Shown here: piece by piece, positions 14,082 to 42,151 of the stretch
Position numbering within the stretch: the stretch's first letter is position 1
Layout: every line of letters starts with the position of its first letter
From: Pelomyxa schiedti
Taxonomy: Eukaryota; Protista; Evosea
Direction of reading: 5' to 3'
Assembly: GCA_020536535.1 (NCBI GenBank)
Contig: JAHLWZ010000650.1
Location: 1-42,151, forward strand
DNA: 42,151 nt
Notes under the pieces: generated by a model
Told to the model about the DNA's origin: nothing
The model's input: only the letters and a program-made list of their open reading frames with translations
The model's database searches: none
Made by a program: the position numbers and the translations under genes

Positions 14082-17000
14082 TTAGGTTCTGTTGGGATTG
14101 AGGTGTTGGGGGAGGCTCAGGAAGTGGGGGGATGAGTGTGCACTACTGGTGGTTGTGGTTGTTGGGTTTACCAGGGGAGATATAAGCTTGCATGTTAGAA
14201 TCCCGGAGTGTTTGTATGTAGTCAACCTGTGGTGTGAAAGTCATTAAATAAGTTGGGAGTGCACAAAGAAATGTACCGGGCCTGTTTTTCTTCATCCACG
14301 AAGTAGATTGGGTGTGCTTGAGGTAGTTCTTGGATGATCCTCCTCAGGGTTATTTTGCACCCTCCAAGGAAATCCGCGGGGCCGTGGGGATCGTAGTCAT
14401 ACACAGCCACTTTGATAGGTGTGTCCATACCTCCGCATGCTCCAATGTTGAGGTTCACAGGTGCGAAAGTGGGTGAGAGCTCTTGTGTGTGGACTTCAGT
14501 GTTAATAATCACGGCTTCGGTGTCCGGGTTGATTACTTGAAGGAAAGGGTCTGAAGTGGGTCGATCAGTTGCCAAGTTTAGATTTTCTTTCTCTCGATAC
14601 CAGATAAGCCAACGAGATCATCACTCCGAGGAAGCTCCGTTACGCTGAATTGCACCTGGTAATCTGTAATAGGGAGATATATAGCTTGACAAGAATCCAC
14701 GACAAGGCTCAAGTGTGAGGGTCTGTCTCGTTTTACAAAATCCACACCAAGGAAGTTCCCATACCTCGACTTATTAATCTGCTGCTTTACCTTGATCGAT
14801 GTACATACACCCATAAATCCAAGGTTACGCAAAGTCGTGTGCGCATGATGGCAATGGGGAAGGCTTATTTCTATATCCGTATCTAGTGTTTGAACACCCT
14901 CAAAGGGGATTGTGAATTCCATTTGTACATCCTGTGAGAAATATCAAACTTTTAGTGGAGGTCGGTGAAGATACCGCGAAGAACGGAGTTTCGAGGAGTA
15001 CACTAGGAAGACCAGTGCATGATGTGCCTTTCAGCTTCAAAATCCCACCTACAACATATGGGTAACTCCTTCCCCATTTATTTGCTTTGTACCTGTAACA
15101 GAATCTGGATGGGAAGGCGCGGTGAATCGACACGACAGGCGATATGCAGAAGCATTGAATACTGTTGGTGAAACGTTTACAAAAGGCTGCACGTCAAGTT
15201 GCATGCAACCCGAATTTCTATACATGGGTGTGCTGCAAGTGGTAAGCCCAACCTAACACTGGCATACATACTGAATTTTCTTTTTGTTTGACAGTTCTCC
15301 AAACCATATTCCGAATAGCAAGTCCCGGTAATTACAGTGCACTTTGCCTACCTGTATTCGTAGACCGCCCTTGAAGCTGTACACACACAACTGAGAGAGG
15401 GGTTTAGAAGTGCCACGGTGTCAGTTTGGAAATGGTAAACCTTTAACAGGCATGTATTAAAGAGCTCTGTATAGTTACGTAGCGAAATACTAAAAGGCTT
15501 CCAATCCGGGGAAGAGCCTGTAGCAAGTTCAGACCTGTGGAGATTAGTACAATTTTCTCACTAACTGCCTTTAACCTGTGTAATAAAATAAGTGGTTGTT
15601 CTGACATGCACAAAAACAGTTCGAACCACAAGTCACTATTACAGTCCAACTTGATTCCTTTAGGCCTATGGATTTTGTTGAGTGTTGCATGGCATTTTCT
15701 TACTTACTGTATGTTAAATGAATCATAAAGAGGAATTTGTGAGACTCTATCAATGGGTTCAGAGGAAATAATGCGGAAGGCACCAGCTGAACTTGTGACT
15801 GATACGCCTTCTGGCTTAAGAGCGAAATTGAAGGAAGAAAAGAGCCACTCCCTTAGTGTAACTTCCATGGAGCCAATAAGGTCATTTGATCCATCCTGTA
15901 ACAAAATAAGAAAGAATTTCATTTTCTTTCGTACTTTGAAGTGGTTAAAACATTTGACAGAAAACTCAGAGTCCCACCCATCAACATCCTCAGGGGAAAT
16001 TTCAAATGGTTTCCAAGGAGAATTATCAGTGGAAGGGACACTGCGGTATAAGAGGAAAGAGTGATTTTTACTAAGAATTTCGAAGTAAGGGGCTGAATTA
16101 TGTGAGACAGATACTTTTGAAACACTTAGACATACCCCCAGTGCTGGTAAGTCTTGTTCGCTTCAAAGAAACTCCAGTAGCCGTGACCCTGAGTGCTGTA
16201 GGCAATCCCTGTAGAGGAGCAAGGAATGGAGTAAACTGATCCACAGAAAAACAACCGCAACTACAGTAAAATGTATTAGATTAAAATTGAGGAATTGCAT
16301 ACGTTGTTAGAGAGGTATCAGTGTAAAGAGCATCCTGTACATTCCCAAATGACCACTCCCGTAGGGTTGTTGTCAGTGAGCCAATCAGGTCATGTGAGCC
16401 ATCTGTTAAAAAGGTTGGATGTGAATTTTGGTGGGGGATGATACCATTATCCGAGTCATAAACCATCACTTTGAACTTTTTATCAAAAGGTAGGTCATGT
16501 GTGCGAACAATGAAAGGTTGCCAAACAGGGTTCAGGCATTTCAAAATGACCTCTGAGCGATAAAGAGGGATAGGTTTTTTCCTTGCTTCAGAGTCCACAT
16601 AAAGGATGAAAAATGGATCTAAATAAAAATAAGAACTCTTTTTGAAAACTTGAGCCAACCTGATTTTCCATTAATATCTTTGGCTGCAAGCTTCCTTCCA
16701 GATACAGTCACTTTAAAAGCAGGAGACTCTTGAATGGAAATGATGGTATTTTCCGTTGGAATTGGCTTTGCTAAAGTAAACCCTCCTGAATTGAGACTAA
16801 GCCGTGGGCCACTTGGAATATTTTCATTAACAAAGAAAACTTGTGTACATAAGTTACCTCAAAGGAAATGTGAACCCGTTATAGATAAAGTCAGATATTT
16901 TCAATTTTACACTGCCGATTTCTTCATGTGATCCATCTAAAAAAAAAAAAGTGTAAGCGGAATAGTCGTGGGTAAATTATGTTCCTGCATCCCAGTCATA

Positions 17001-20000
17001 AACGACTACAGTGAAACTTCCATCCATCCCATTCAATTCAGCTAAATTTAATTGGAACCCTTTCCAGTCGGGATTAAGATTTTTGGGTATCACTTCTGAT
17101 CTTTGTGCGAGTTAGAATTTTGATTGGCAGGATGAAAAACCTGTAAAGGGTCAATTGAGAGGAAGACAGAATCTTGAAGAAAGGATCTGCGGAAAGAAAA
17201 ATCAGAGCCCAAATGCATGGAATTGTGAAAGCCTACCTGACTTCCCATTGAGGTCTTTGCTGCTCAGTTTAGAGGAACAGCATTTAAAGGAAAACGAGGG
17301 AGGAGGCTCATTTGTGGGCTGATTGTGCCTCTCAAATAGATGCTTGGTAGATTTCAAAGGAGATATTTCTTCCAAGATGAAAGCAGCATTACTGTAAGGG
17401 TAAGAAGGGGAAGAGAAAACGGTGGCAAACCTGTCCCTCAATTGCAGTGTGCGATTACGAAGTGGGTATGAAAATCCGCCACATAACAAATCCAGCAACA
17501 TTAATTCACATTCACCAACTTCCTTGTGGTTTCCCCTCCTTGAAAAGTGCAACACCCTATATAGGAAATTGATGTATTAGGAGGAGAGGATTCTAAATGA
17601 TTTAAATATACTTGAACTTCAGTGATGCGTCTGGAGATCCGAAATCTTCCAAGTCAATTTGGAATGGAGTCCAAGTGCCAGAGAGGCTATTATCATTGGG
17701 TGATGGCCCTGTACGCACCTGTTTCATTTTTGCTGCATTCATCGTTTCTGTGCAATACAGCATTTTTTCTTGCTTAAATAATTGCAGTATAACACCCTTC
17801 CCTGTAAGAGTAAACTAATGTAGGGTCGACTTTGGAAACCTTTTCTGGGTGTGAGTTGAGCAATTCCAAACTTGACTGAATATGAAGGGGAATATTCTCG
17901 AACCGGAGCAACAGCTAAGGTTTCTTCTATACGAAGGCAGAATCCTCCTCGACTTCATGTAGGTTAACAGATAAAATGACATTTAAATACATGCTTGATA
18001 ACGCCACCACTTAGGGCCGTTCGGTACTCTCCAAAGACAAGATCATGTATGGTAAAATGAGATGTTCCAATAAGGTCGTGTCCTCCATCCTTGGGTTGCT
18101 TTTAGGTAATTTGGTACCTTGAGTGACTGTATACCGTATCCCAGTCATAAACATCAACGAAAAATGTTGTATTTAGTCCACAAGTAGCTGGTAAAACAAA
18201 TGAATTCCAAGATGGATTCAGTGTCTTGGCCATAACTTCGAGAAGGAAAACCAGTAAGAGGAGCCAAGGTAATCACGAAAAACAAATACCTTCACTTCGG
18301 TAAACTGGCAGTTTTTTACCATTCTCTTCAGTGTACACGATGAAGAAGGGATCTACACAATAGTTAGGAAGACAAAACGACTCCAAAAAAAAACCAGAAA
18401 GCCCATTGACATCGCAGGCGGCAAGTTTGACTCCCCAAGGAGAAACCCTGTATGCTGCAAACGTCGGAATAGATACAGATTGTTGAAGGAAGGTGAGTTG
18501 ATTTACACATAGAGCTCCAACTTCTCGCCTGTAGTTCAGTAAGTAAAAAAAGAACACTCTGAATCGGGAAAGCAACCCAAGTGATCCACTTAACGATTCT
18601 CTATAGGGCAGGAAGAGCCATGTGCGCAATGTTGTTGACAAGGTGCCAATTAAGGCATGTGCCCCAACTTCACTGAAGGCGTACAAATTGACTGTAAAAA
18701 TATCATCAACAGACCCAAGATCTGATAAGCTGTTAGAACATTTGTCCGAAGTGAAACGAGTGACCTGAAAGATTCAGAGCGAAATCTCGCCATTGAATTG
18801 ATTTTCGGGGAGCAGGCTCTGATCTATGTAAGAGCTTCTGATTAACTCCAAATACCTCCAAGAAAAATGCTTTTGAAAGGTCATTTAGCAAGACTTCCTT
18901 TAAGGTGGAGATTTTAATTAATTGTTTGTAGATTTACTGTCTTGTGTTGCGTGTGCAGTCTTTGAAAAGAAAATAGCTGATCCCGACATATGTTCCAGAG
19001 ATAGATTAACCATCACCGCAGGGGGAAAAACCACAGGAGGAAGTGGTGGAATGGAGACCAATTCATCAATTGAGAAGGCACCAGTGTTTAAGTTGTGATG
19101 CTTCAATCCATATCTCCAAGGACCTAGTATCAATTCCCTGTTTTATTTTGTTACTGTTTTCCTATTGACTTTTTTTTTTTTGCCTAAGTGGAATTGTGAC
19201 CCTTCCAATCAAGTCATGTCCCCCGGTTCGATCCTGTTGATGTGAGTTGGCCCAACAATGCTACTTAGATGGCAAAAAGGTGGGGTAGGAGCGCACCCAA
19301 TCAAAGACTTTGACTTCAATGGTGGAATTTAGTCCCATGTCAATAACATTCAAAGAGAATGCATCCCAAGAGGGGCTAAGGTTTCTCCTTACAAAAGAGG
19401 ATCTATGGAGCAGCACAGGTCCCTTGGTGCTAGCTGTAGGTCCGTACACCTCAAAGAAGGGATCTTTTTTTACTCTTAAAAGTCTTTATCTGCAATTTCA
19501 CAAGTACCAGAACTCATGGATACATCTCGAACAGATAAGTTAATTGCCCTAGCCTTTATTTGAAGAGCAGCAGGAGAGGATTTCAGGAGTGGTTGGTCAG
19601 CGAACCTTACTGCATCAATTGAAAAGCCACCACAAGACCTAAGACTAATTAGAATCCGGCTGTAAATAGCAAAATACATTGGGCTGGCAGAATAAACCCC
19701 TATCAAGTATGGGGTAAACAACCACTCACGAAGAGTAGTTGTAGCAGACCCAATTAGGTCATGACCACCATCTTGGTGACGTAAATGGTTATTCCCAAAA
19801 AAAAGTAACAGCTACCTGAATCCCAGTCGTACACTTCAACTATAACGTCAGTGTCTTGAGACGTTACATCCGCAACATTAAGTCCAAATTCTTCCCAAGA
19901 GGGATCACGTTTGTGGCTCACAACCTCAGATCGGTAAAGAATAACTGGACGTTCCTCTCCTGTTGGTGTTCCTCTGATGATAAAATACGGGTCTAAGTAC

Positions 20001-23000
20001 ATGTGAACTATCACCTCAAATAGTTTGATTTTACCTGATGACAGAGATAAATCTCGGAATGCTAGCTTCCTTGCACTACTTTTTACAAAAAGAGATGAAA
20101 AATGAGGCTTTGGAGAAGCTATAGGTTGTGCTACAATGGAGTCAACAGAAAAAGCACCAGATGTACTATGTATGGTAAGTGTGCTTTGGTGTGACTCAAG
20201 AATTGTACAGGGATGCAGTAGTCGAGGAGTAAATCCCAAATTGATATGGAGTGAAGAACCATTCACGTAAAGTTGTTTCTGATTGCCCAATCAAGTCATG
20301 GCCGCCATCTTCAAGACTGAGGATTTAAATGGATACATCAACAATTGGTACCTCCATCCCAGTCATAAACACAAACAGTAAAAGGATTATCCACATCAAG
20401 CAAATCCTCTAGATTTAATGCAAAAGGCTTCCATTTTGGTGATTTGCAAGCCATTACAACTTCAGACCGGTATAAAGTGATTTGTTTTGAAAAACCAGGA
20501 GGTTTTCCCTTGATCACAAAGAAGGGATCTGCAGGTAAATGAGAGATTATGAGGCAGTGGTTTTGTTGTACCTGAGGAGAGAGATGGGTCACAGGCAGAG
20601 AGCTTCATCGCACTCGGAGAAACGAGTACTGAATTAAACTGAGGTCTCACGTACTGTGTATCTTGGAGTAACACCTCATCTACAGAAACGCCACCTGCCG
20701 TACTGATATTTTTATTGAGTTTACAATAAAAGGAGAAAGGAGTAACGTGATTGAAGCTTCAGAAAGATGTATTCCAAACAAATACGGAGTAAATAACCAC
20801 TCTCGCAGAGTTGTTTCCGCTGAGCCAATGAGGTCATGCCCCCCATCTTTTTTTTTTTTTTTTTTTTTGAGTAAGTGTGAAAAAGAAGAAATTACACCCC
20901 AAACCTGCATCCCAATCCCATACAGATACTTTGAATTTAGTGTCCAAGTTGGTGAGATCTCTGAGATTCAAGCCAAAAGGCTTCCATTTGGGATTTTTGT
21001 TTGAAAGTATTACTTCTGAACGATACAAAGTGATCTCTTTGCCTATTTCTGGTGGAGATGCTCTGATCACAAAGAAGGGATCTAAAGATCGCGTTAAGAG
21101 GATGTGTTTCTAAAAGAGTCCTTACCGGAAGAGCCAGACACATCTCGGGCAGCTAATTTTGATGCACTTAGTGTTACCTGAAGTGCAACAAACTGTGGCT
21201 TGGGATACTCTGTTGGTTGGAATTCCACACGATCGACGGAGAATGCACCAGCAGTCCTAAATACGATTAAGATAAAGACAGGTCGGCAACAGTGCTAACG
21301 TGATTGAGGAAGTTGACAGGAAGATTCCAAACTGGTATGGAGTAAACAACCATTCCCTTAGTGTCGTTTTTGCTTCTCCAATGAGGTCATGCCCTCCATC
21401 TAAATTGGGAGTTATTCCAAATTTCGAAGGCTTGAAGGGTTGCAGGCCTGCATCCCAATCCCACACGGAAATTGTGAAGTTGGTATCTCTGTCTATTACG
21501 TCACGTAAATTCAAGCCAAATGGTCTCCAAGATGGATTTTTGTTAGCCTTCAGTACTTCTGAGCGGTAAAGTGTTATCTCTTTTTCCATTCCTGGAGGGG
21601 TTGACTTGATAACAAAGAAAGGATCTATTCAAGAAATTAGGAAGCCAACAAGACAAGTTTGTGACGACCTGAGGTGCCAGATACATCACGACTGGCTAAT
21701 TTCATGGCACTGGGCTTGACAGAGAGAGCAGCAAAAATAGGGGGTGTGTGCTCAGTGTCTTGTAAGGTTATAGTGTCGACAGAAAAAGCACCGCAACTTC
21801 TGCAGTGCTATTACTAGGTGGATGGACATAAGAAAACGCACGTTGGATTTAATTTCGTATAAAGACCGAATTGGTATGGTAAAAAGAACCATTCTCGCAA
21901 AGTGGTCTTCGACTTCCCAATAAGGTCATGCCCACCATCTACGTAATGCCCCAACCAAGGAGTACATATGGTTTTGTCATTGTTTTGGGTTGTTGACACT
22001 CAAATACCTTCATCCCAGTCCCAAACTTGAATTTCAAACTGTGTGTCAATATCCAATACATCAGAGAGGTTAATCACAAAGGGTTTCCATGATGGGTTTT
22101 TCTTATTTTTAAGAACCACTTCAGAGCGGTAAGTGGTAATCTTGTGGTGTCCAGGCTTTTTTGTTTTTACCACAAAAAACGGGTCTTGGGAAGTAAGAAT
22201 AAAGCTAACCAAGCAGAAAATGCAACCTGAGGAACCTGTGGCATCTCGGCTGGCTAAATTCATGGCACTGCATTGGACTGAAAGAGACTTGAAGTGTGGC
22301 TTCAAATATTCTTGAGTTTGGAGTACAATCTTGTCTACGGAGAACCCACCAGAAGATCTGGGGAAGTGGGTAAATGCATTGCTTAGAATTTAAACAAAAA
22401 AAGTGAAGTGGCGTACAATCCAGCTGTGCTGTGTGTTCCAAGCAGATATGGGACAAAAAGCCATTCTCTTAAAGTGGTTTCAGCTGAACCAATAAAGTCA
22501 TGGCCACCATCTAAAGTAACGTCTCAACAAACTAAAGAGTGAAAGAATGGCGACCATTATCCCAGTCCCATATTTCAATTGTAAATTGTGTGTCTAGGTC
22601 CGTCACATCGTGCAGGTTTATTCCAAATTCCTTCCAAATTGGGTTTAAATTGGCCTTCACAACTTCAGAGCGATAAAGTGTCACTTGTGAGTGGTGTCCT
22701 GGGGGTTTTGATTTGACAATAAAGAAGGGGTCTGTAACGGAGTTATGAGAAGGTTGGGAAAAAGAAGAGGAGTAAACCAGATTTTCCATTGGTGTCCTTG
22801 GAAGAAAGTTTGGTGGCACTGGCACATATTAATACAGAGGCAGGGATATTCCAAAAAATAGGGTCTGCTTGCTCGACACGATTAACCCAGAAAGCACCGT
22901 TTGTTCTTCGGGTAGTAATCAAAGAATCACATGAAATTGGGAAAGAAAATGGCCCTAGAATGCAGTCTCTCAGGTTAATTTCAACATTTCCGATCAGGTC

Positions 23001-26000
23001 ATGCCCTCCATCTGTAAATGTGTCCGTTTTTAAGGCAGTAGAAATCAGAAACCTGAATCCCAGTCCCAAACAGCAATGTGGATTGGTACGTCAATTCCCC
23101 CTACATCTTCCAGGTTTATCACAAAGGAAGCCCAGTCTGCTTGATGAGAGACCAGAAAAGTTAAGAAAAGGACCAACCGGGGTTCAGGTTTTGCTTTATA
23201 ACTTCACTTCTGTAGATTGTGACATTCCCTTTTGCTCCAGGTGGTCTTCCAGATACAACAAAAAACGGGTCACTTTTTTGTCCTGGACCCACATCTTTGA
23301 CTGCCAGATTGCATCCTGAACAGAAAAGCTTCTTTCTTTGAGGTGCTGAATGGATGGAATGCTCAGCCATACCCTGAAAGCAGAAGAGATATTCATTGGC
23401 GCAGGCGCTACAGTAAGGGCTTCCAGTTTAGTGCACACAAATGCTCCTCGCCTAGTCACACGATCAAAGGGTATTATAGTAGGCGAAAAAGAACGCACGA
23501 TCTGGAAGATGAATTCAGTAAGGGGTGTCTGAACGGTCCCAAACTTTCGTGTGTTACTAAAGTAAATGATATAAAGCATCAATTACCACCAATCTCTCAG
23601 TGTGAGACTGCAAGACCCAATCTAGAAACAAGTTATATTTTATTGGAAATTGGCTACTACATACCAAATCATGTTTGCCATCTTTGTTCCAATCCTAAAA
23701 AAATACCAGCCTTAGTTCCGAAAAAAAGAAAAGCCATTATAGTGGGAACACACAAAAACATGAACAGAAAATTGGTTGTCGAGGCCTGCCATAAAATGTT
23801 AAAAAAAGTTGCAAAGTGAAGGAGTAAACTTTTAATCAGTGTCGAGTCTAGCATAAAGGTTGCCCAGGCAGGTGATGTACTCTTCGTAACTACTTCAGAC
23901 CGATACAACGATATCTCCTTGTCTCCTTGTCTCACCGTGACAACAAAAAAAGGATCTGGATTTTGAATCAGGGAAAGAAAGATCAAATGGAAGGTCTGTT
24001 CACCAGATGGCTGGAAACCAGTCACATTGAAGTCGAGTTTGGCAATTTTGTCCCCACATGCTGTAATGTTATAAGCAGGGGCGAAAGAAGGCTGAGGAGG
24101 AGCAGAAGCTATAAGTTCCAGTTTATTTACAGAAAATGACCCCTTGGAAGAGTTGTGCTCTAAAACTGCCTGCTGGTATGGCCCTATAGTCCAGATTGTT
24201 AGGCACTCATGGAGAGAGAGGGAGAACCATTATCAGACTGTATGAGAGAGCATGTCCACTCTCGCAGAGTGGTTGAAAGAGACCCAATTAACTTTGGCAA
24301 GGTTGTTAAGGGGATTACTTGACGAGTCACCATACGTCATGGGTGCCATCTTGGTCATAGTCATATACCGTAACAGTGAAAAGTGAGTCCAAGCCTCCTA
24401 AAATTGTGACACCGATGTCAAATGGAAGCCAAGTTGGCTCCAGTGTCTTGAAGCACACTTCAGATCTTTGTTTTGTGTTAGAAAAAAAGCCCACTAACTG
24501 GTACTGGTGGGAAGGAAGGTACACCTGTACACTGTCACACCACTCTTTATAACCAAGAAAAAGGGGTCGCTTTTTCCAAGGGGACCATCCATTCTAGCCA
24601 ATTTGGAGGCACTGCAGGTGATGCGAAGTGCTGTTGGGATCACAAGTGAAGCACTTGTCTCGAGGCATTGCAGAGATTCAACGCACATGCAGCCACAACT
24701 AACAAGTTTGTTACACAAATGGAGAGAACCCAAGTTTTCTACAGACTTGGAGGTGCCCTTAGTGATGGGTTCTTCAACCCACCACTGCAAGTCATGAAAT
24801 GGAAGGGATACAGAACCGATCAAATCATGTGCTCCGTCTAGTTTCTTATTGAGTTTGAAAAGACAGGAAAGTGCTGGTTACCTTTCTCCCAATCAAAAAC
24901 GGATATATCAATTGTGTCAGTTGGACCCTTCAATAGCTTTAGGGATAGTTCAAAAGGCTTCCAATGAGGCTCTTTCGATTTCATGATCACTTCAGACCTT
25001 TTTCCCCCCATAAGAAGTGAAGAAATAAATCAATAATGAAACAACCTGTACAGTGTAATCTCTTGATTCAAGGCGGGATCAAACTTCCTAACCACAAAAA
25101 AAGGATCAGCGGACATTGTTTGGACATTCATTGCTGGCAATTTTCGTGCGAAGACAGTCATCCTATTGTGGTTGGATTAACAGGGTGATTGCTGGAGGAG
25201 CTTATACTTGGCAGCCGGAGGCAAGAAAAAGTGATTTTCAACAGGTGTAGGCAACATGACAACCTTGTCAATGGAGAACGAACCGGCAGAACCACCACCT
25301 GGTTTGTTTATTGCTGTTGTAAACCACCCAAGTGACATCTCTCTGGCTGTGACAGAAAAACTCCCTTTTGAAAAATATCGTCAGAAGAGAATTGAACTTA
25401 GGAAGAATGCTGGTTACCCATATGCTCGTGATTTCCGTCTTGCTCCTTCAGCAAAAAGTTAGGGTGAAACGACTTAAATATCAGGGCATACCCAATCAAA
25501 TATTTTAAAGGTCATTTTTGTGTCCAAGGAATTGTGTATATTTAGGTTAAAAGGCTTGAACTGAGGTGCAAGACTTTGTTTCACAACTTCCGATTTATAA
25601 ACTGCTGGATGTCAGGCCAAGGTAATAAAGACTAATAATAAACCTTTGTCAGGAAAGAAGATCTCAAAGAATGCATCTATTTGTTGTGCATAAAAAGGAA
25701 GGACATTTTAAGTCATACTAACGCACCTGATTTCCTTATTCCAACACCTGCACGCTCAAGTTTTGATATACTGCAATGAACTTCGATTGCAGGTACCTGT
25801 GTAATTAGAAGGGGTGCCTCACATGGAACCACTCCTTTTACACCAAATGATCCATTGCTGAGATTTTCTTAAAGGTTTTTTTTCTCAATTTAAGGAATAC
25901 CATGAAGAATCTTTTCTTATTGCTTCCTCGTACCAAGACCACTGAAGTTCACTGAAAGGAACTGTGAGACTTCCAATGAAGTCATGTGAACCGTCATTAT

Positions 26001-29000
26001 CCTTGTCAAACACATCTTTTTTTTTCAGAAACAAAAATTTGATTGAGGGGGTACCGATGGTAAAAGTGTCGTTTAGTGATGTAAACAAGTGTAGTGGCAG
26101 TGTGAACTCAGTCCACGTTGGAGTAAATTGCTAAATTGGGGTTTGCAAGGATTCCAGGTAGATCTGTGGATGTGGCTACCTTGAGAATAGCTTCACTCCT
26201 GTATAATATTGTGCCATTTTTCTTAATCTCAAAGAATGGGTCCACAGACATGGTAAGTGTATCACATATTGGAAGCTTTCTAGCATAACATTGCATTCTA
26301 CAGAGTATATTATATATAGCCGATATATTGGATTTCAAGAAAAAACCTTAGAGCAGGAGGTAATGCACTACTTCTTGATGGTGGTTCAGACAGGGGTATA
26401 GCCTTGGAGACAGAGAAAGATCCGGAAACTTTAGATCCATTTCTTATTGCAGTCGAAAACCACCCAAATGACAGCTCGCGAATTTGGCATCTCACCTCTC
26501 CAAGTAACTCATGGTCACCTTTTTTTTGTTTTTTACATTTGTGAAATATGTACTCAAGGTACTTGTGGCAAACCATCTTTATTGTAATCAAAGCAATGGA
26601 AAATAGCAACTGTGTCCAATCCAGATGTCAATGAAATGACAAACGGCTTGAATTCTGTAAAAAAATTATAAATGCATCATCCATTGAAAAATAAGAGAAA
26701 TGACTACTTGGGTTCAAGTTGGCTGTGAGAACTTCAGATTTATAGACTAATTCATCTGGAGTTAGGGGAAAAGCTGAAAAGGGGTGTTTCAGAAGAACCT
26801 TTCGAGGTTCCAATTGTTACAGTAAAGAAAGGATCTGTTAGCTTGTTATTTTACCCCATGTCATTCAAGAAATGGGAACATGCCACAAGAGCCGAGTGGC
26901 CCATTTGCCCGCACCAAATTTTCACAGCAACAGTGCAGTTCCAGTGCAGAGGGGGTAGGAGGCATACTTTCAGCAGGAACAGGCTTCATGGTGGGTTGAT
27001 AAATGGTACAATATGATATATGTATACCTTCAGCTGATGAATGACAAAAGTGCCATTTGTGACAGTATTTTCATATTTGAACAGCAGGGGTGTTGTTGTT
27101 GTGAAGCTGAAGGAAATCAAAAATAGAATATATAAAAGGAATCACCACGATGGAGGGTGCAGTGGATACTGAAAAGGTCCTCCAATCAGTAGTTCATAAA
27201 GAGTAGTTTGATACCTCCCAATCTCACGGTGGTCACCCCTTTTTTCCCAGTCATACACAACCTGGGATTTCATTAATGGTGTCTAACTGAGGTTGAAGTG
27301 GGCCACACCAAAGTAAAGGGACTAAAGAAGTCACCAACGCTGCTTTTACTGAGTGTAAATGGTGAAAAATCAGGGTTGTTGTTGTTGGAAAGATGCTCTG
27401 ATCTATAGATTAATTTATTTGCAACTGTCACTTCGAAGAATGGGTCTGCTCTTTCCTGGAGGCACATAAAAAAGACTTAAAATTCCTTCACATTTCTCTC
27501 ACCAATGAACCAGGGATACTCAGTCTTTTGGCGGAGGCAGTAATCATGAAAGCTTCTACTCTTGTGTCATACGGGGGTGTGAAGGAACTCTGTCTTACTG
27601 GGTCATCGAACACAATGTTTCCTGCACTATTCCTCTGTGATTGAGTGCGACACTTGGCTTAAAAATAGAGGTACCTTGATGAACCACATAAAACGGAAAA
27701 ATTCTTGTTTGGGAATCTAACAAGTGCAAATGTACACAGTTTGGAGGTGCCGATGAGTTTGTGTGCTCCATCAACATCACAGTGATAGACCTCTACCTGC
27801 ACTAGATTAAGCGAGAACATTAGTCTCACTACTGCAAACCATCAACATTTCTCTTTGGTTGCTGTTCCAGAGGCTTGTGGGTAAGGAAAAGGGAGCCCAT
27901 GCAGGGTTTTGGGTGTTGGGAGCCACCTCCGATCGGTACAAACTTGTTGTCTTGGTGGAGATCACAAAAAAAGGGTCTGTAGAAGGAAATTAATTCCCAA
28001 ATCTCAATTTTAAAGGGAAACCTAGTCTTTTGGAAAAGACATCTTTTCTAAGACAAAAAGCAGACAATTTGAAAGTCCATGCATAAGGTTCCACAGCAAA
28101 CAAATCCAGAGGCCCAATTGAATTCATACTTTCGACCCAAAAAACACCAGAATTTCCAGTGAGCTTTCTATAAAGTATACATAAGGTGAAGAAAATACGG
28201 GTATCAAGATGATACTTTTTGGCTGGATTGATAAGAGGATATGGAAAGGGAAATTGAAGTAAGAACATGCTATCAGTAAAACGGCCAATTTCTTCAATAT
28301 CACCATCATCATCAAAATCAAATACAGTAATAATAACTTCAGTTCTCCAACCTAAAAGTATTCAAAGGGCAGAAATTTAATGGAGGATCTACTACATTGT
28401 GAGGAGAGTTCTCGAGAATCAAGAGAAAAGGGAGCCCATGTAGGATCAAGAGTTTTACGTATAACTTCACTTTTGTATAAAAGGGAGCCATCAGGTAGGG
28501 TAATTGTAAAAAATGGATCTGATTTTCCTAGGGGGCCATCCTTTTTTTCCAGTTTTTGAGCCCTACAGTTGAATCTATGCAGTGTAAAAGCAAAGGAATA
28601 GAAGATAAATAAAAAGGGGTGACAATACGAGAAAGCTGGAACTTGTGAAGGGATTGGGTGCACCTGTGGAGCCGCACTCACTATAATAATCTGGCCATCT
28701 CTTTTACCCTTCTTGTTGACCAAATCCATTGCCCTGTTAACTTCAACAAGGCTTCTCACCTGTGGAAGAAAGAAGAAAAACAGTATGCAAAATTGCTAAA
28801 CAATTCGCTACTACAAACCTCAGTTGTAATAAAACCCATGTAATCGAATCCACCATCAGAGTCCCACTTAAATTGAATGAAGTGAGTAAAACAAACATAC
28901 AAAAGGGGACCGGCACATACATCCCAGCAGTCAATTTTAACTTGGCCAGAGGCACCCCCAACTTCATGCATCCAAAGGGTAAATTCAGCCCATTCTATAT

Positions 29001-29448
29001 GCATGTGAATGAGTTAACATGGAGTCTTTGACTCAGAGTACCAGGGTCTAGAGTGTGCATAATAACTTCTGACCGGTACACAATTTCATTTGTTTCAGTA
29101 TTTGTAATCGTAAAGTATGGGTCTGAGCACCCAGAGTTTAGAAATTTGAAAGAAAATGAGCAACACAAATAGCTATTGCACACACAGAGGAAAGAAGGAA
29201 ACAACAAACAAAAACAAAAACAACAAAAAACTGACCACTCTTCGCAAAAAGGCCAACATCCATCTTTGGCAACTTTCTGCCATGCAATTTGAGCCTCAGA
29301 GCTGTGAATGCCTCGGCCCGTTGGTCGCGCACAACCGTGGGTGGTGCCTGCCCATCCCACAAGTTTATTCCTCACTCAAAACCCAACAACCCATCCAAAC
29401 CCAAAGCACCACAACCAAAGAACAAAAAAAACCTACCGTAGCTGCCAT
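14082..29448 (-). CDS. Giant tandem C2-domain protein, about 27 copine-type C2 repeats, no vWA domain (many short introns)
   Basis: The motif set (K/R)D...SDPFF...LYRSEV....NP.W.PF...VYDWD.DG.HDLIG...TTLREW recurs every ~550 bp from 29300 to 14280. The junctions I checked join in frame. Likely start at ATG 29448; likely stop at 14082 after YKHSGIL. Confidence 0.88.
19740..23100 (-). repeat. Block of ~6 most similar C2 units with shared intron positions
   Basis: Repeated DGGHDLIG..TTLREW.F.PY.FG and PPG..K.ITLYRSEV. Introns recur at S|DPFF, at xD|GGHD and in the linker, with a period of about 540-560 bp. Confidence 0.8.
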
Positions 29449-29719
29449 GGGCAACCTCCCAACTGATATTTGGATTTTTGGTGTTTCTCATGACCTGAGG
29501 TTTTCGTGTAACAGTGATCTCCAATTCTTGCACTGAGTGTCATTCTCAGTAGCGAGACTTTGGACTGAGCCCATTTTTTATCCTACCACGGACACTTGAC
29601 TGATAAGCAACTGAGAACAAAGGAATGTGATGGAGGGAAAGAATCCTTTTTATTTTAGTCGGTTGTGACAATCAATACTCAAAAGCAATCAGAAGGTACT
29701 TCCAGCCATTTCTTTAGTG

Positions 29720-30967
29720 CTAACCGTTTACTGGTGTGCCTCCATTTGGATGAAGAACCTTGGAAAAAGGAAGTGAAAAACAATTGCCACACCAAAGAGA
29801 CCAATACCTGTCCAGTGAAATAGGAAGAGTCATCAGATGCCAAGAATACATAGGATGGTGCCACTTCACCTTTTTTTGTTATTAGAATAAGACTAAACAA
29901 AAAAAATCACCCACAAGGATGGCCAGCTCTCTTCATAGGAACCTCAGAGCCAAACCTGATGACAAGGTAAATCTTTGGCCGCAAATTATGTAATGATTTT
30001 GATACTTTTCTACTTTATCTGCCTTGAACGATGCTACTATCAGAGGAGTCCTGTTATTGGTTATTAGGAGTTTCTTGTTGAATGTCGTTGCAACGAAATA
30101 CCATATGGGTCCTGGCGCAACAGCATTGACACGGATGTTTTTCTCAATGAGTCCAGCAGCAAGAGACCTTGTTAAAGTAGTTATTGCACCCTTAGTAAGT
30201 TAGAAAAAGTTGAAAAACGATAAACAACCTTAGTAGCTGCGTAGTCTATAAGTGAAGAATTCCCTTTATAGGAATTCACACTTGTGCTGTTTATAATGCA
30301 GGAGCCCGGCTTCATCATTGGCAGGCAGTACGATGTCAGGTAAAACATACTCAGTACATTTGTTCTGAAAAATAGGAAGTTAAGGATGCAGGAAGGATTT
30401 AGGAATACTTGAAGGTGGACTCGAGTTTCTTGAAGTCTAGCTTCTCTATAGTTTGCTCATGTTGTTCAGCAGCATTGTTCACTAGAACGTCAATGTGCCC
30501 CATTTTCTTTTCCGCAATATCTGCCACATTCTTGCAGAAATCTTCGTCACCAATGTCTCCTGGAACGTTCACACATTGAGCACCTTCTGCTTCAACCATA
30601 CGCTTTGTCTCTTCGGCATCACTATGCTGATGATACATTAGACTTCTTTGCCTTTGCTACAACATTGGAATACCTCAGATAAATACACATTGAGAATTAC
30701 TGTTGCCCCTTCTCGCGCAAAGTGCACAGCAATACTTCTTCCAATTCCACTATCACCACCAGTAATAAGAACAGTTTTCCCACTAAGTTTCCCACTACCC
30801 TAGTATTTTTTTTTTTTAATTGTCAAAGACACAACTCGGTTAGTTGATGAAATATGCTTTTTCCTATTAACCTTGTAAGAATCGCGTATGACCGTTGGCC
30901 TTGGTGTCATTTCGGACTCAATGCCAGGCAACTCTTGTTCTTGTGGCGGAAATCCAGTGGTTTGCAT
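29720..30967 (-). CDS. Classical short-chain dehydrogenase/reductase, YdaD/general-stress-protein-39 type (multi-exon)
   Basis: [49 protein letters not shown], catalytic [35 protein letters not shown]. Confidence 0.93.
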
Positions 30968-40645: not shown

Positions 40646-41827
40646 TTAGGACTTGTCCGACTTTGGTGTTGGTTTTTCCTTTTCCGTGACAGTTGCACCA
40701 GAGTACACCAGCTTTGCCAGAATGGACTGCAGCTCCTTGGTGGATTCATCGTCACTATCACCCTCTACATCCTCATCCACAGCAGGCAGGTTCCCACCAC
40801 CACCACCACCACCAGAAAACATAGCGGCGCTGGAGAGGGCGTAGTAGCTCCTAGGGGCGGGGGCACTGGGCTGGGTCCTGGCCCGCTTGGTAATCTTCCT
40901 GCGGCTCCGCAAGTACGCGCTCAGCAGGGCGTTCCTCTGCTCGTCCTCCTCGTCCCCGTCCTCATACTCCTCCGCGCCGTCCCCGCCCTCCTCCCCGTCC
41001 CCGTTTCCACTGCCACTGCCGTTGCCAGTGCCGTCCTTTGGTGCCTCGGCGCCGCCGGCCTTGCGGGCATTCTCGGCCGCTTGCATTTCCTGCCATTCCT
41101 CCAGGGCCTGCAGGTCCTCCTCCGACACAAGGGGGGCCTCCGGCGTGCCCGCGCTCCCGCTGGACCGCCTCCCTCTCCCCCTCGCAGCAGCGGAGGCCGT
41201 GTAGCGAGATCCTCCCTCCTCCTCCTCTTCCTCCTCTCCCTCGTCCTCCTGCTGGTCGTCCTCCTCCTCCTCTTCTTCGTCGTCTTCGTCGTCATCCGAG
41301 GGCTGCTCCTCCGAGGACGAGTCGCTGTCGGCGCCCATGGCCAGGGCCAGGGCCTCGGGGTCCCACAGCTCCTCGGTGGGCTTGACCGCGATCGGGTTGG
41401 CGTCCGCCTCGGCCGCGGCGGCGGCCTCGCACCCGGTGCCGTCGTCGTCGAACCGCAGGTGCTTGGGCTGGCACTTCGCGTCGCCCTCCCGCAGCCTCAG
41501 CACCGCGCCCTTGAGGTGGTGCCGCCGCCCCCTCGTGCGCCTCGCCCTCTTCTGCGGCACCTGCCTGGCGCCCGCCCCGCGCCCCGCCTCGTCCCCGCCG
41601 CCCCCGCCAGCTTCCTCGTCGACTGCAACGTTGGCCTCCGCATCTCGTCGAGTGGTGGTGGGTGCCGAGGTATTGTTCGTTGTCGTCGTCGTGGACGACG
41701 TGGTTGTTGGGGCTGTGTCGATGACGAAAGGAATGACTTCATCGGAAGTGGCCGAGATAGGAGCTAAACTCATCGTTGCAGGGGCTTCCGACGAAGAGGC
41801 CGGTGCCGCGGTCTGGTCTTGTTGCAT
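40646..41827 (-). CDS. Acidic, low-complexity, probably disordered protein with basic NLS-like patches (single exon)
   Basis: 393-aa ATG-initiated ORF, GC-rich. Poly-E/D tracts; KRARRTRGRR and RSRRKITKRAR patches. Confidence 0.7.
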   Translation of the reverse strand: MQQDQTAAPASSSEAPATMSLAPISATSDEVIPFVIDTAPTTTSSTTTTTNNTSAPTTTRRDAEANVAVDEEAGGGGGDEAGRGAGARQVPQKRARRTRGRRHHLKGAVLRLREGDAKCQPKHLRFDDDGTGCEAAAAAEADANPIAVKPTEELWDPEALALAMGADSDSSSEEQPSDDDEDDEEEEEEDDQQEDEGEEEEEEEGGSRYTASAAARGRGRRSSGSAGTPEAPLVSEEDLQALEEWQEMQAAENARKAGGAEAPKDGTGNGSGSGNGDGEEGGDGAEEYEDGDEEDEQRNALLSAYLRSRRKITKRARTQPSAPAPRSYYALSSAAMFSGGGGGGGNLPAVDEDVEGDSDDESTKELQSILAKLVYSGATVTEKEKPTPKSDKS

Positions 41828-42151
41828 CGTTTAATTAATCCTAGCAGATCTGGTGCAACTGCATTTCTATCATCAAAAAGAAAGAATTGGTTGAGACCCT
41901 CTTGCAGATGGAGACAGAGGCCTCGAAGTTCTCGTTGCTGCAAGTGCATGCACACAACACCCATGCGTCTCGTATTTGACCACCCACCCACACAGGCGGA
42001 CTTTCTGGCGCAGGACGACCCAGTGGTCATTGTCTGGGACTGCCCAAGTGTGCACACTTTTTATCGGGTTTATTAGTTTTCTCAGTCCAGAGACGAGGAA
42101 CTGAGACGGAAAAAAAAGGCGTTTTCTACAAGACCATCGGCCACGGGGTGC

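Follow-up and report, generated by a model that had tools for sequence, protein, structure and literature searches.

A giant Pelomyxa schiedti gene predicted to encode a soluble chain of 27 C2 domains

What kind of gene underlies a protein-level repeat with a period of ~550 nucleotides (nt) that runs along the minus strand of a contig between 29448 and 14082? The question is raised by contig JAHLWZ010000650.1 of Pelomyxa schiedti, an anaerobic amoeba; the contig was analysed over its whole length of 42,151 nt, hereafter the window. An earlier note had proposed that this stretch is a single giant gene encoding about 27 tandem copine-type C2 domains and nothing else. Our analysis places a 15.4-kb, 92-exon poly-C2 gene in the window, and we consider it likely that the product is one soluble protein of ~3,650 amino acids (aa), made of 27 C2 domains of the copine/synaptotagmin kind, which would act as a Ca2+-dependent, multivalent membrane binder.

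The gene was modelled with our own profile-to-genome spliced aligner, which admits GT/GC-AG introns in all phases. For the gene ends and for a single region that gave no profile signal, the closest paralogue and the public protein P0006 served as guides. On three paralogous loci the aligner gave 3127 of 3137, 3162 of 3177 and 3141 of 3174 residues identical to the NCBI proteins Pelo_10634, Pelo_9897 and Pelo_11264, respectively (>99.5%, the figure reported for this check). The coding span occupies 14082-29448 on the minus strand, where it opens with the ATG at 29448 and closes with the TAA at 14082-14084, and comprises 92 exons and 91 introns, 10,947 nt of coding sequence and 3,648 aa, the length being uncertain by 1-12 aa at two junctions. 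The predicted product has a mass of ~406 kDa and an isoelectric point of ~6. All 3,648 codons are free of internal stops across the 91 introns, which have a median length of 44 nt and in 82 cases measure 38-60 nt. The bounds, the single uninterrupted frame and the size of 3,500-3,800 aa put forward in the earlier note are in agreement with this model. Because the locus is collinear with three paralogues annotated as single genes and its frame is intact, we infer that it is one protein-coding gene, expressed as a single message with ~11 kb of coding sequence.

Each unit is laid out in three exons, separated by introns of ~44 nt at the conserved phases 1, 1 and 2. The first exon type reads ..GAFSVD..linker..KLAxRDxxGxS, the second DPFF..LYRSEV..NPxWxxF..VWDWD, and the third DGGHDLIG..TTLREW.F.PY. 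A minus-strand motif scan for the DPFF, (Y/H)(R/K)SE and HDLIG cores located them at 29078, 28477, 27938, 27407, 26744, 26203, 25599, 24997 (split by an intron), 24465, 23905, 23214, 22675, 22131, 21568, 21025, 20472, 19936, ~19410, 18828, 18302, 17100, 16562, 16048, 15539 and ~14509. Every core listed in the earlier note was found within ~10 nt, and the two units that it called degenerate (~17750 and ~14950) turned out to be real, though divergent. Tandem Repeats Finder reported no ~550-bp tandem repeat in the DNA, so that the array is visible at the protein level alone, because the units are old and diverged (mean amino-acid identity 32%). Collapse or expansion of units during assembly was considered and rejected, in view of this mean identity and of the two youngest units being 72% identical with saturated synonymous sites. 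An apparent break between units 20 and 21 was also rejected, as an artefact of the aligner's gap costs; canonical or GC-donor splices preserve the frame there.

The identity of the units was examined with a hidden Markov model (HMM) of the unit, built in this analysis and run on the spliced model. It recognizes 26 units with expectation values (E) from 2e-17 to 7e-52, covering 88% of the residues and leaving linkers of 7-10 residues. The Pfam C2 profile (PF00168) matches eight of ten stop-free pieces, six over the curated cut-off (>22 bits) and two just under it, and matches P0006, which represents the 3' third of the gene, at 168 bits. When the unit profile was compared with the PDB, BONZAI1 ranked first (89.5 bits over the whole chain), and on single domains BON1-C2B scored 66 bits, dysferlin 63.5 and synaptotagmin-1 58, which is a small margin. 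The nearest small relatives include true copines that carry PF07002.

The predicted fold points in the same direction. An AlphaFold model of two neighbouring units (23-24), a repeat pair of the kind that the earlier note had proposed to model, consists of C2 sandwiches of eight strands each, joined by a 9-residue linker, at a predicted local distance difference test score (pLDDT) of 94.7 and a predicted template modelling score (pTM) of 0.90. With this model Foldseek retrieved BON1 first (1.4e-14) and C2A-C2B of E-Syt2 second (1.7e-10), followed more weakly by synaptotagmins and ferlins, and all of its matches are C2 proteins. The designation copine-type therefore seems reasonable, with BONZAI1/BON1 at the top by both PDB profile and Foldseek and true copines among the near relatives.

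The remaining stretch, cryptic unit 26 (14674-15186, minus strand; aa 3358-3485, 128 residues), cannot be matched to C2 by sequence; the paralogues and homologues from Pyxidicula and Rhizamoeba conserve it at the same position. Its AlphaFold2 model (pLDDT 80) is an 8-strand sandwich, for which the best VIA-align match among 48,161 PDB chains is BON1-C2B (Z 8.6 over 113 residues), with nearly all of the next rows being C2 as well; by Foldseek the match is weak (E ~0.01). Judged by its predicted fold, unit 26 is C2-like and brings the number of C2 domains to 27, in line with the earlier count of about 27 and nothing else: 26 by the unit HMM and one cryptic by fold.

Indeed, the chain is filled by C2 units and short linkers. 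No transmembrane helix was found over the spliced protein, where the maximum 19-residue Kyte-Doolittle hydropathy is 1.45, and an apparent hydrophobic N-terminus is intron 1 (see below), so that the earlier view of a soluble protein without a transmembrane helix or signal peptide stands. Neither this contig nor any of the three contigs with paralogues has a match to the copine vWA domain (PF07002), and P0006, which includes the C-terminus, contains only C2, as expected from the earlier claim that no vWA domain interrupts the array. FerA, FerB, FerI and DysF domains are likewise absent from the stop-free pieces and P0006, which match PF00168 only. On the Pfam record, Pelo_9897 and Pelo_11264 carry PF00168 only, and Pelo_10634 also PF13517 and PF00792, neither of which is a ferlin accessory domain. 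PF07002 exons were observed on 16 other contigs of the genome, e.g. C711:18764-19289, C1169:8407-8655, C701:11295-11867 and C894:54084-54649; judging from these matches, P. schiedti appears to possess a large set of true copine genes beside the giant poly-C2 genes.

A six-frame search of the organism's own genome (52.4 Mb, 5,337 contigs) revealed three more arrays, on contigs C800, C790 and C812. They correspond to Pelo_10634 (3,367 aa), Pelo_9897 (3,601 aa) and Pelo_11264 (3,594 aa), each deposited at NCBI as one hypothetical protein, to which the present protein is 62%, 47% and 44% identical, respectively; by sequence, the gene is thus the fourth member of a paralogous poly-C2 family. The four share the all-C2 architecture, collinear units and intron positions, and have in common the penultimate, cryptic unit as well as the last unit and tail. 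In HMM order, units 1-14 and 17-26 pair one to one with units 1-24 of Pelo_10634 at 42-78% identity, compared with the within-gene mean of 32%. Moreover, 56 of 83 introns coincide in column and phase with those of Pelo_10634, and 13 more lie within 3 columns. The present gene has 27 units versus 25 in the paralogues, with two extra central units (15 and 16) that arose by recent internal duplication, and it lacks the N-terminal extension of ~175-190 aa found in Pelo_9897 and Pelo_11264 (P0160:1-190 and P0161:1-175), in which Pfam detected no PH domain at E <=1. These extended paralogue loci lie at ~15,500-31,000 of C790 and ~79,500-95,500 of C812.

Between the paralogues, the nonsynonymous measure pN is 0.28, versus a saturated synonymous pS of 0.77. 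Relative-rate tests gave 234 versus 239 and 253 versus 212 unique changes, and this copy is not accelerated. The paralogy is old and under purifying selection. The array is therefore older than the gene duplications, every position is under constraint of its own, and this copy has the behaviour of a functional gene.

The potential for Ca2+ binding was read unit by unit from the residues at the classical ligand positions in loops 1 and 3, i.e. the D of KLAxxD, the D of DPFF, the two of D-x-D, and the D of HD, written as five-letter patterns. All five aspartates (DDDDD) occur in 14 of the 27 units, whose loop 3 also bears an aromatic residue at its tip (DWD/DFD/DYD). With coordinates on the minus strand, as for all units below, and E values of the unit HMM, these are unit 1 (28667-29314; aa 16-140; 2.7e-34), unit 6 (25824-26366; aa 681-801; 1.9e-39), unit 9 (24113-24643; aa 1087-1206; 1.9e-43), unit 11 (22869-23393; aa 1347-1479; 5.8e-45), unit 12 (22321-22850; aa 1486-1612; 2.1e-47), unit 13 (21763-22299; aa 1620-1747; 2.3e-48), unit 14 (21220-21741; aa 1755-1884; 7e-52), unit 15 (20666-21198; aa 1892-2020; 1.2e-50), unit 16 (20129-20644; aa 2028-2156; 8e-50), unit 17 (19602-20107; aa 2164-2292; 9.2e-44), unit 18 (19053-19580; aa 2300-2425; 2e-39), unit 20 (17922-18467; aa 2568-2688; 1.1e-36), unit 23 (16227-16732; aa 2969-3095; 6e-44) and unit 27 (14306-14673; aa 3486-3591; 7.3e-26), the last of which also scores 31.6 bits with Pfam C2 on a stop-free piece. 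Unit 14 is counted here with the donor 3 nt upstream (tcag/gtcgtc), as used in its sister units; the donor chosen by the aligner places H at the second ligand. Unit 15, the first of the extra units, is 72% identical to unit 14.

Two further units retain four aspartates: unit 2 (28119-28648; aa 147-269; DDDDE; 2e-32) and unit 10 (23418-24088; aa 1215-1338; DDDND; 5e-43). The rest have partial sites or none. Among these, unit 3 (27593-28094; aa 278-402; 4.6e-27) reads DDHDK, unit 4 (26981-27565; aa 412-542; 1.1e-31) GDDER, unit 5 (26394-26959; aa 550-671; 1.9e-36) NDDNE, unit 7 (25255-25802; aa 809-928; 6e-38) GDDEE, unit 8 (24704-25227; aa 938-1066; 2.5e-40) NDDED, and unit 25 (15187-15733; aa 3233-3357; 2.1e-17) DDS-I. 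In unit 19 (18489-19028; aa 2434-2560; KDASA; 1.8e-25) the Ca2+ site is lost both here and in the paralogue. Only the C-terminal half of unit 21 is detectable (17358-17706; aa 2748-2832; 2.2e-18), its N-terminal half being degenerate and without Ca2+ ligands. Unit 22 spans 16757-17309 (aa 2849-2960; 1.4e-25), and unit 24 (15755-16208; aa 3102-3225; 1.1e-31) shows RANFD, a pattern identical to that of unit 22 in the paralogue, by which it is predicted to be a Ca2+-independent C2. The ligand pattern is repeated unit by unit in the paralogue, and GDDER of unit 4 is common to all four genes.

How such a protein would work can be proposed by analogy. The message, with ~11 kb of coding sequence, would be transcribed from the minus strand and spliced from 92 small exons. 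Upon a rise in cytosolic Ca2+, the competent domains of the protein would bind this ion and attach to anionic phospholipids. Judging from the homologous C2 domains of copines, synaptotagmins and ferlins, each of the 14 competent units should take up 2-3 Ca2+ and dock on anionic lipid via loops 1 and 3, whereas the Ca2+-independent domains could serve as spacers or protein-binding sites. The 27 domains on one chain, the very short linkers and the confidently predicted, fixed packing of neighbours suggest that the membrane binder is stiff, very long and multivalent, its Ca2+ threshold being steep. With many sites on a single stiff chain, high cooperativity and very high avidity of binding would be expected, and one molecule might cover or bridge membrane in the order of 100 nm, a length estimated from typical C2 dimensions, as a coat, tether or wound patch.

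To our knowledge, the characterized multi-C2 proteins hold at most ~7 C2 domains, all with anchors or effector domains. In the literature on giant or tandem C2 arrays, Pelomyxa C2 and 20-27 C2 domains, we found no description of such a protein; "multi-C2" there refers to ferlins, E-Syts and MCTPs. Copines, e.g. Arabidopsis BONZAI1 (PDB 6KXK), carry a vWA "A" domain, PF07002, after exactly two C2 domains (PMC10968396). They provide the best profile and fold match, especially through C2B, share the DPF..(S/T)EV..NP.W and G.H.LIG motifs, and are soluble without a transmembrane helix, but they combine two C2 with a vWA domain where the present protein has 27 C2 and no vWA. In addition, the orientation of neighbouring units in our model is unlike that of BON1 C2A-C2B (TM-score 0.40, root-mean-square deviation ~20 A over both domains).

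Ferlins (dysferlin, myoferlin and otoferlin) pack their domains into a defined, ring-like tertiary structure which, with Ca2+, closes on membranes (PMC12264198). As the largest characterized multi-C2 proteins, they likewise mix Ca2+-binding and non-binding C2 domains, and their packing shows that a multi-C2 chain can be ordered and need not be floppy. [quoted passage not shown] Extended synaptotagmins/tricalbins and MCTPs resemble the present protein in using tandem C2 domains, in their case for Ca2+-regulated membrane tethering; they differ in having 3-5 C2 domains together with an SMP lipid-transfer domain and/or membrane anchors, which are absent here.

The architecture is not unique: besides the four paralogues of P. 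schiedti, uncharacterized giant homologues exist in many protists. In an exhaustive profile search of 1.84 billion representatives, 120 proteins were found at E <=1e-30, many of them 2,000-5,000 aa long with 10-25 matched stretches. The sources named are the amoebozoans Pyxidicula, Rhizamoeba, Phalansterium, Luapelamoeba and Protostelium, the apusomonad Thecamonas, the metamonads Carpediemonas, Anaeramoeba, Histomonas and Trichomonas, as well as Diphylleia (CRuMs), the glaucophyte Cyanophora and, among stramenopiles, a pelagophyte. Their labels read hypothetical, "C2 domain-containing" or "Ca2+-dependent lipid-binding" throughout. Examples are Pyxidicula operculata TRINITY_DN5524 (25 units in 3,568 aa and 27 units in 4,016 aa, each a single Trinity transcript), Thecamonas trahens AMSG_10679 (3,282 aa), Carpediemonas KAG9393611 (2,517 aa), Anaeramoeba KAJ5068616 (3,901 aa), a Histomonas protein (3,283 aa) and Trichomonas vaginalis XP_001302514 (1,682 aa); the Phalansterium and Luapelamoeba homologues also lie on single transcripts. 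On the homologues that were counted, the unit HMM finds 7-27 copine-like C2 units each.

The amoebozoan giants share the cryptic unit before the last C2. The 4,016-aa Pyxidicula open reading frame (ORF) and the Thecamonas protein differ from the present gene in having an N-terminal PH domain (E 1e-9 in the former; PF00169 on record for the latter). Beyond Pelomyxa, unit-by-unit orthology is evident at the ends only, and in more distant proteins C2 units cover just 14-70% of the length. On the basis of these alignments, the gene can be assigned to an unnamed giant poly-C2 family of Amoebozoa, marked by at least 24 collinear units with unit-specific signatures, by a penultimate unit that is cryptic, and by conservation of the last unit and the tail.

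What is new is a variant of the multi-C2 architecture whose family is unnamed in databases, while the proteins themselves have already been deposited as hypothetical. A soluble chain of 27 C2 domains represents an extreme of valency that purifying selection has kept in four paralogues, and offers a natural system for studying how C2 avidity and cooperativity affect the Ca2+ thresholds of membrane binding. It may point to unstudied membrane repair, tethering or cortex organization in amoeboid and parasitic protists. A bolder and rather doubtful proposal is that these proteins constitute an ancient, widespread and unnamed class of eukaryotic membrane machinery: semi-rigid filaments of at least 25 C2 domains that would coat or bridge membranes in an all-or-none manner above a Ca2+ threshold, as a Ca2+-switchable skeleton or wound patch unlike copines, ferlins, annexins or E-Syts, with the fixed pattern of competent and dead domains encoding the geometry of assembly.

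Several points weigh against reading the locus as one gene for a Ca2+-dependent membrane binder. Ca2+ and lipid binding are deduced from conserved residues only, and 13 of the 27 domains lack a full site. The fixed neighbour packing is predicted by one AlphaFold model, built from an alignment that mixes paralogous unit pairs. The public annotation splits the locus: no full-length model was found, and two homologue searches sized for a 5' gene model of >=1,850 aa returned none for this contig among public proteins. Finally, the junction in unit 22 requires a GA donor or else loses 12 aa, the frame continuing either way, and the model uses 6 GC donors versus 0, 3 and 2 in the paralogue models.

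The first two points bear on function. A membrane coat, bridge or patch is the role proposed here, with a cytoskeletal scaffold as the alternative. In that case the protein would be no Ca2+/lipid sensor but a scaffold of a structural or protein-binding kind, for example in the cytoskeleton, centriole or axoneme, as with the C2 domains of CEP120 and ciliary central-pair proteins. This would account for the 13 domains without a complete Ca2+ site, whose pattern is conserved, and the C2 domains of CEP120 and of a ciliary tip central-pair protein are among the structural neighbours. The packing of the two-unit model (pTM 0.90) also suggests a rod over loose beads. We nevertheless regard this alternative as unlikely, since 14 domains keep the full aspartate pentad and the loop-3 aromatic under long purifying selection, and the Ca2+/lipid-binding C2 domains of copines, E-Syts, synaptotagmins and ferlins come closest in both sequence and fold.

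The annotation, in turn, could be taken to mean that two or more transcription units share the array. An upstream gene would then end at ~19165 by read-through of the GC donor at 19183, and a separate P0006 gene would encode the last 9 units. P0006, present in the public protein set, comprises the last 1,210 aa of the gene with the same stop, and the 3' third of our model is identical to it. It starts at an internal Met at ~19010 (MVNLSLEHM), in unit 19 at the boundary of units 18 and 19, just downstream of a GC-AG intron in unit 18 (19138-19183, minus strand, 46 nt, cttag/GCAAAA..AAACAG/g), which meets an A-run and a stop if left unspliced. Removal of this intron yields ..IPL-R-ELILGPW.., as in ..TFRELLLGPW.. 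of the paralogue, whereas P0006 alone would start partway through a C2 domain, with no intergenic space before it. The three paralogues, annotated as single genes of 3,367-3,601 aa, are collinear across the supposed break. Furthermore, P0006 itself has a GC donor at 17994, and GC-AG introns are thus accepted in the annotation of this genome. A split of the locus is improbable on this evidence, and a single gene is preferred; a full-length model is probably missing from the public set owing to the GC and GA donors, which is also a lesson for annotation.

The problem junction of this single gene lies in unit 22 (16938-17017, minus strand), where the donor that preserves the domain is GA (gatgcag/GAACAT at 16983) and a TAA follows if it is not spliced. 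In the public model, the intron starts from a GT donor at 17017 instead, which lies 34 nt upstream of the GA, and 12 aa including the DWD loop are lost. It is very improbable that this GA and the 6 GC donors mark a young pseudogene, i.e. a recently disabled paralogue with decaying splice sites whose frame is still free of stops, because the frame is open over 3,648 codons, pN is far below the saturated pS with the proteins conserved, the substitution rate since the split equals that of the annotated paralogue, the Ca2+-ligand pattern is preserved unit by unit, and the GA, with an in-frame GT donor 34 nt upstream, could be a base error or polymorphism.

As a separate observation, non-GT donors are dense in this paralogue, one GA and six GC in all: besides those at 16983 and 19183, they lie at 27160, 26883, 24251, 21447 and 17994. 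This density could reflect tolerated weak donors, base errors or early decay.

At the 5' end, exon 1 (29437-29448, minus strand) consists of ATG GCA GCT ACG (MAAT), with the first in-frame ATG after an upstream stop. It is followed by intron 1 (29348-29436, minus strand; 89 nt, GTAGGT..GGGCAG), a T/G-rich intron whose read-through mimics a hydrophobic N-terminal segment and then runs into a stop. The spliced N-terminus, MAAT-APPTVVRDQRAEAF, matches that of Pelo_10634, MASHRGVVGDQRRETNT, and in its extended form reads MAAT-APPTVVRDQRAEAFTALRLKL.., the first C2 unit starting at residue 16 after an N-terminus of 15 residues. An N-terminal signal anchor (MAATVGFFCSLVVVLW..) was considered and rejected, because the T/G-rich stretch is more readily taken as intron 1 and the spliced N-terminus matches Pelo_10634, which itself has no hydrophobic N-terminus. 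With C2 unit 1 beginning at residue 16, neither an SMP domain nor an N-terminal membrane anchor is present.

An upstream start at 29574 (MGSVQS.., myristoylation-like) was also rejected, since it leads to an in-frame TGA and the sole short intron that would remove this TGA leaves the C2 frame. The 28-codon ORF concerned (MGSVQSLATEND..; 29488-29574, minus strand), with its myristoylation-like start, lies in the presumed 5' leader; no in-frame splice joins it to the C2 exons, and it is therefore possibly an upstream ORF. Directly upstream of the C2 gene is an unrelated, intron-containing gene for a short-chain dehydrogenase/reductase (29723-30656, minus strand). The distance from its stop (~29723) to the ATG of the C2 gene is ~275 bp only, which leaves no room for a PH or other N-terminal domain; a PH domain is accordingly absent from this gene, as it is from Pelo_10634.

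At the 3' end, the C-terminal tail (14082-14305, minus strand) comprises ~57 aa, in which the last strand is followed by a Pro/Thr/Ser-rich end, ..PQHLNPNRT, and the TAA at 14082-14084, and it is interrupted by a 50-nt intron (14227-14276, minus strand). The spliced C-terminus, ..EEKQA-R-LTTYKHSGILTCKLISPL..PQHLNPNRT, equals that of P0006 and has a homologous counterpart at the end of Pelo_10634. Elsewhere in the window, the region 41000-41830 has a G+C content of 65%, against a window average of ~42%, and contains an apparent intron-free minus-strand ORF with a long acidic (Asp/Glu-rich) tract.

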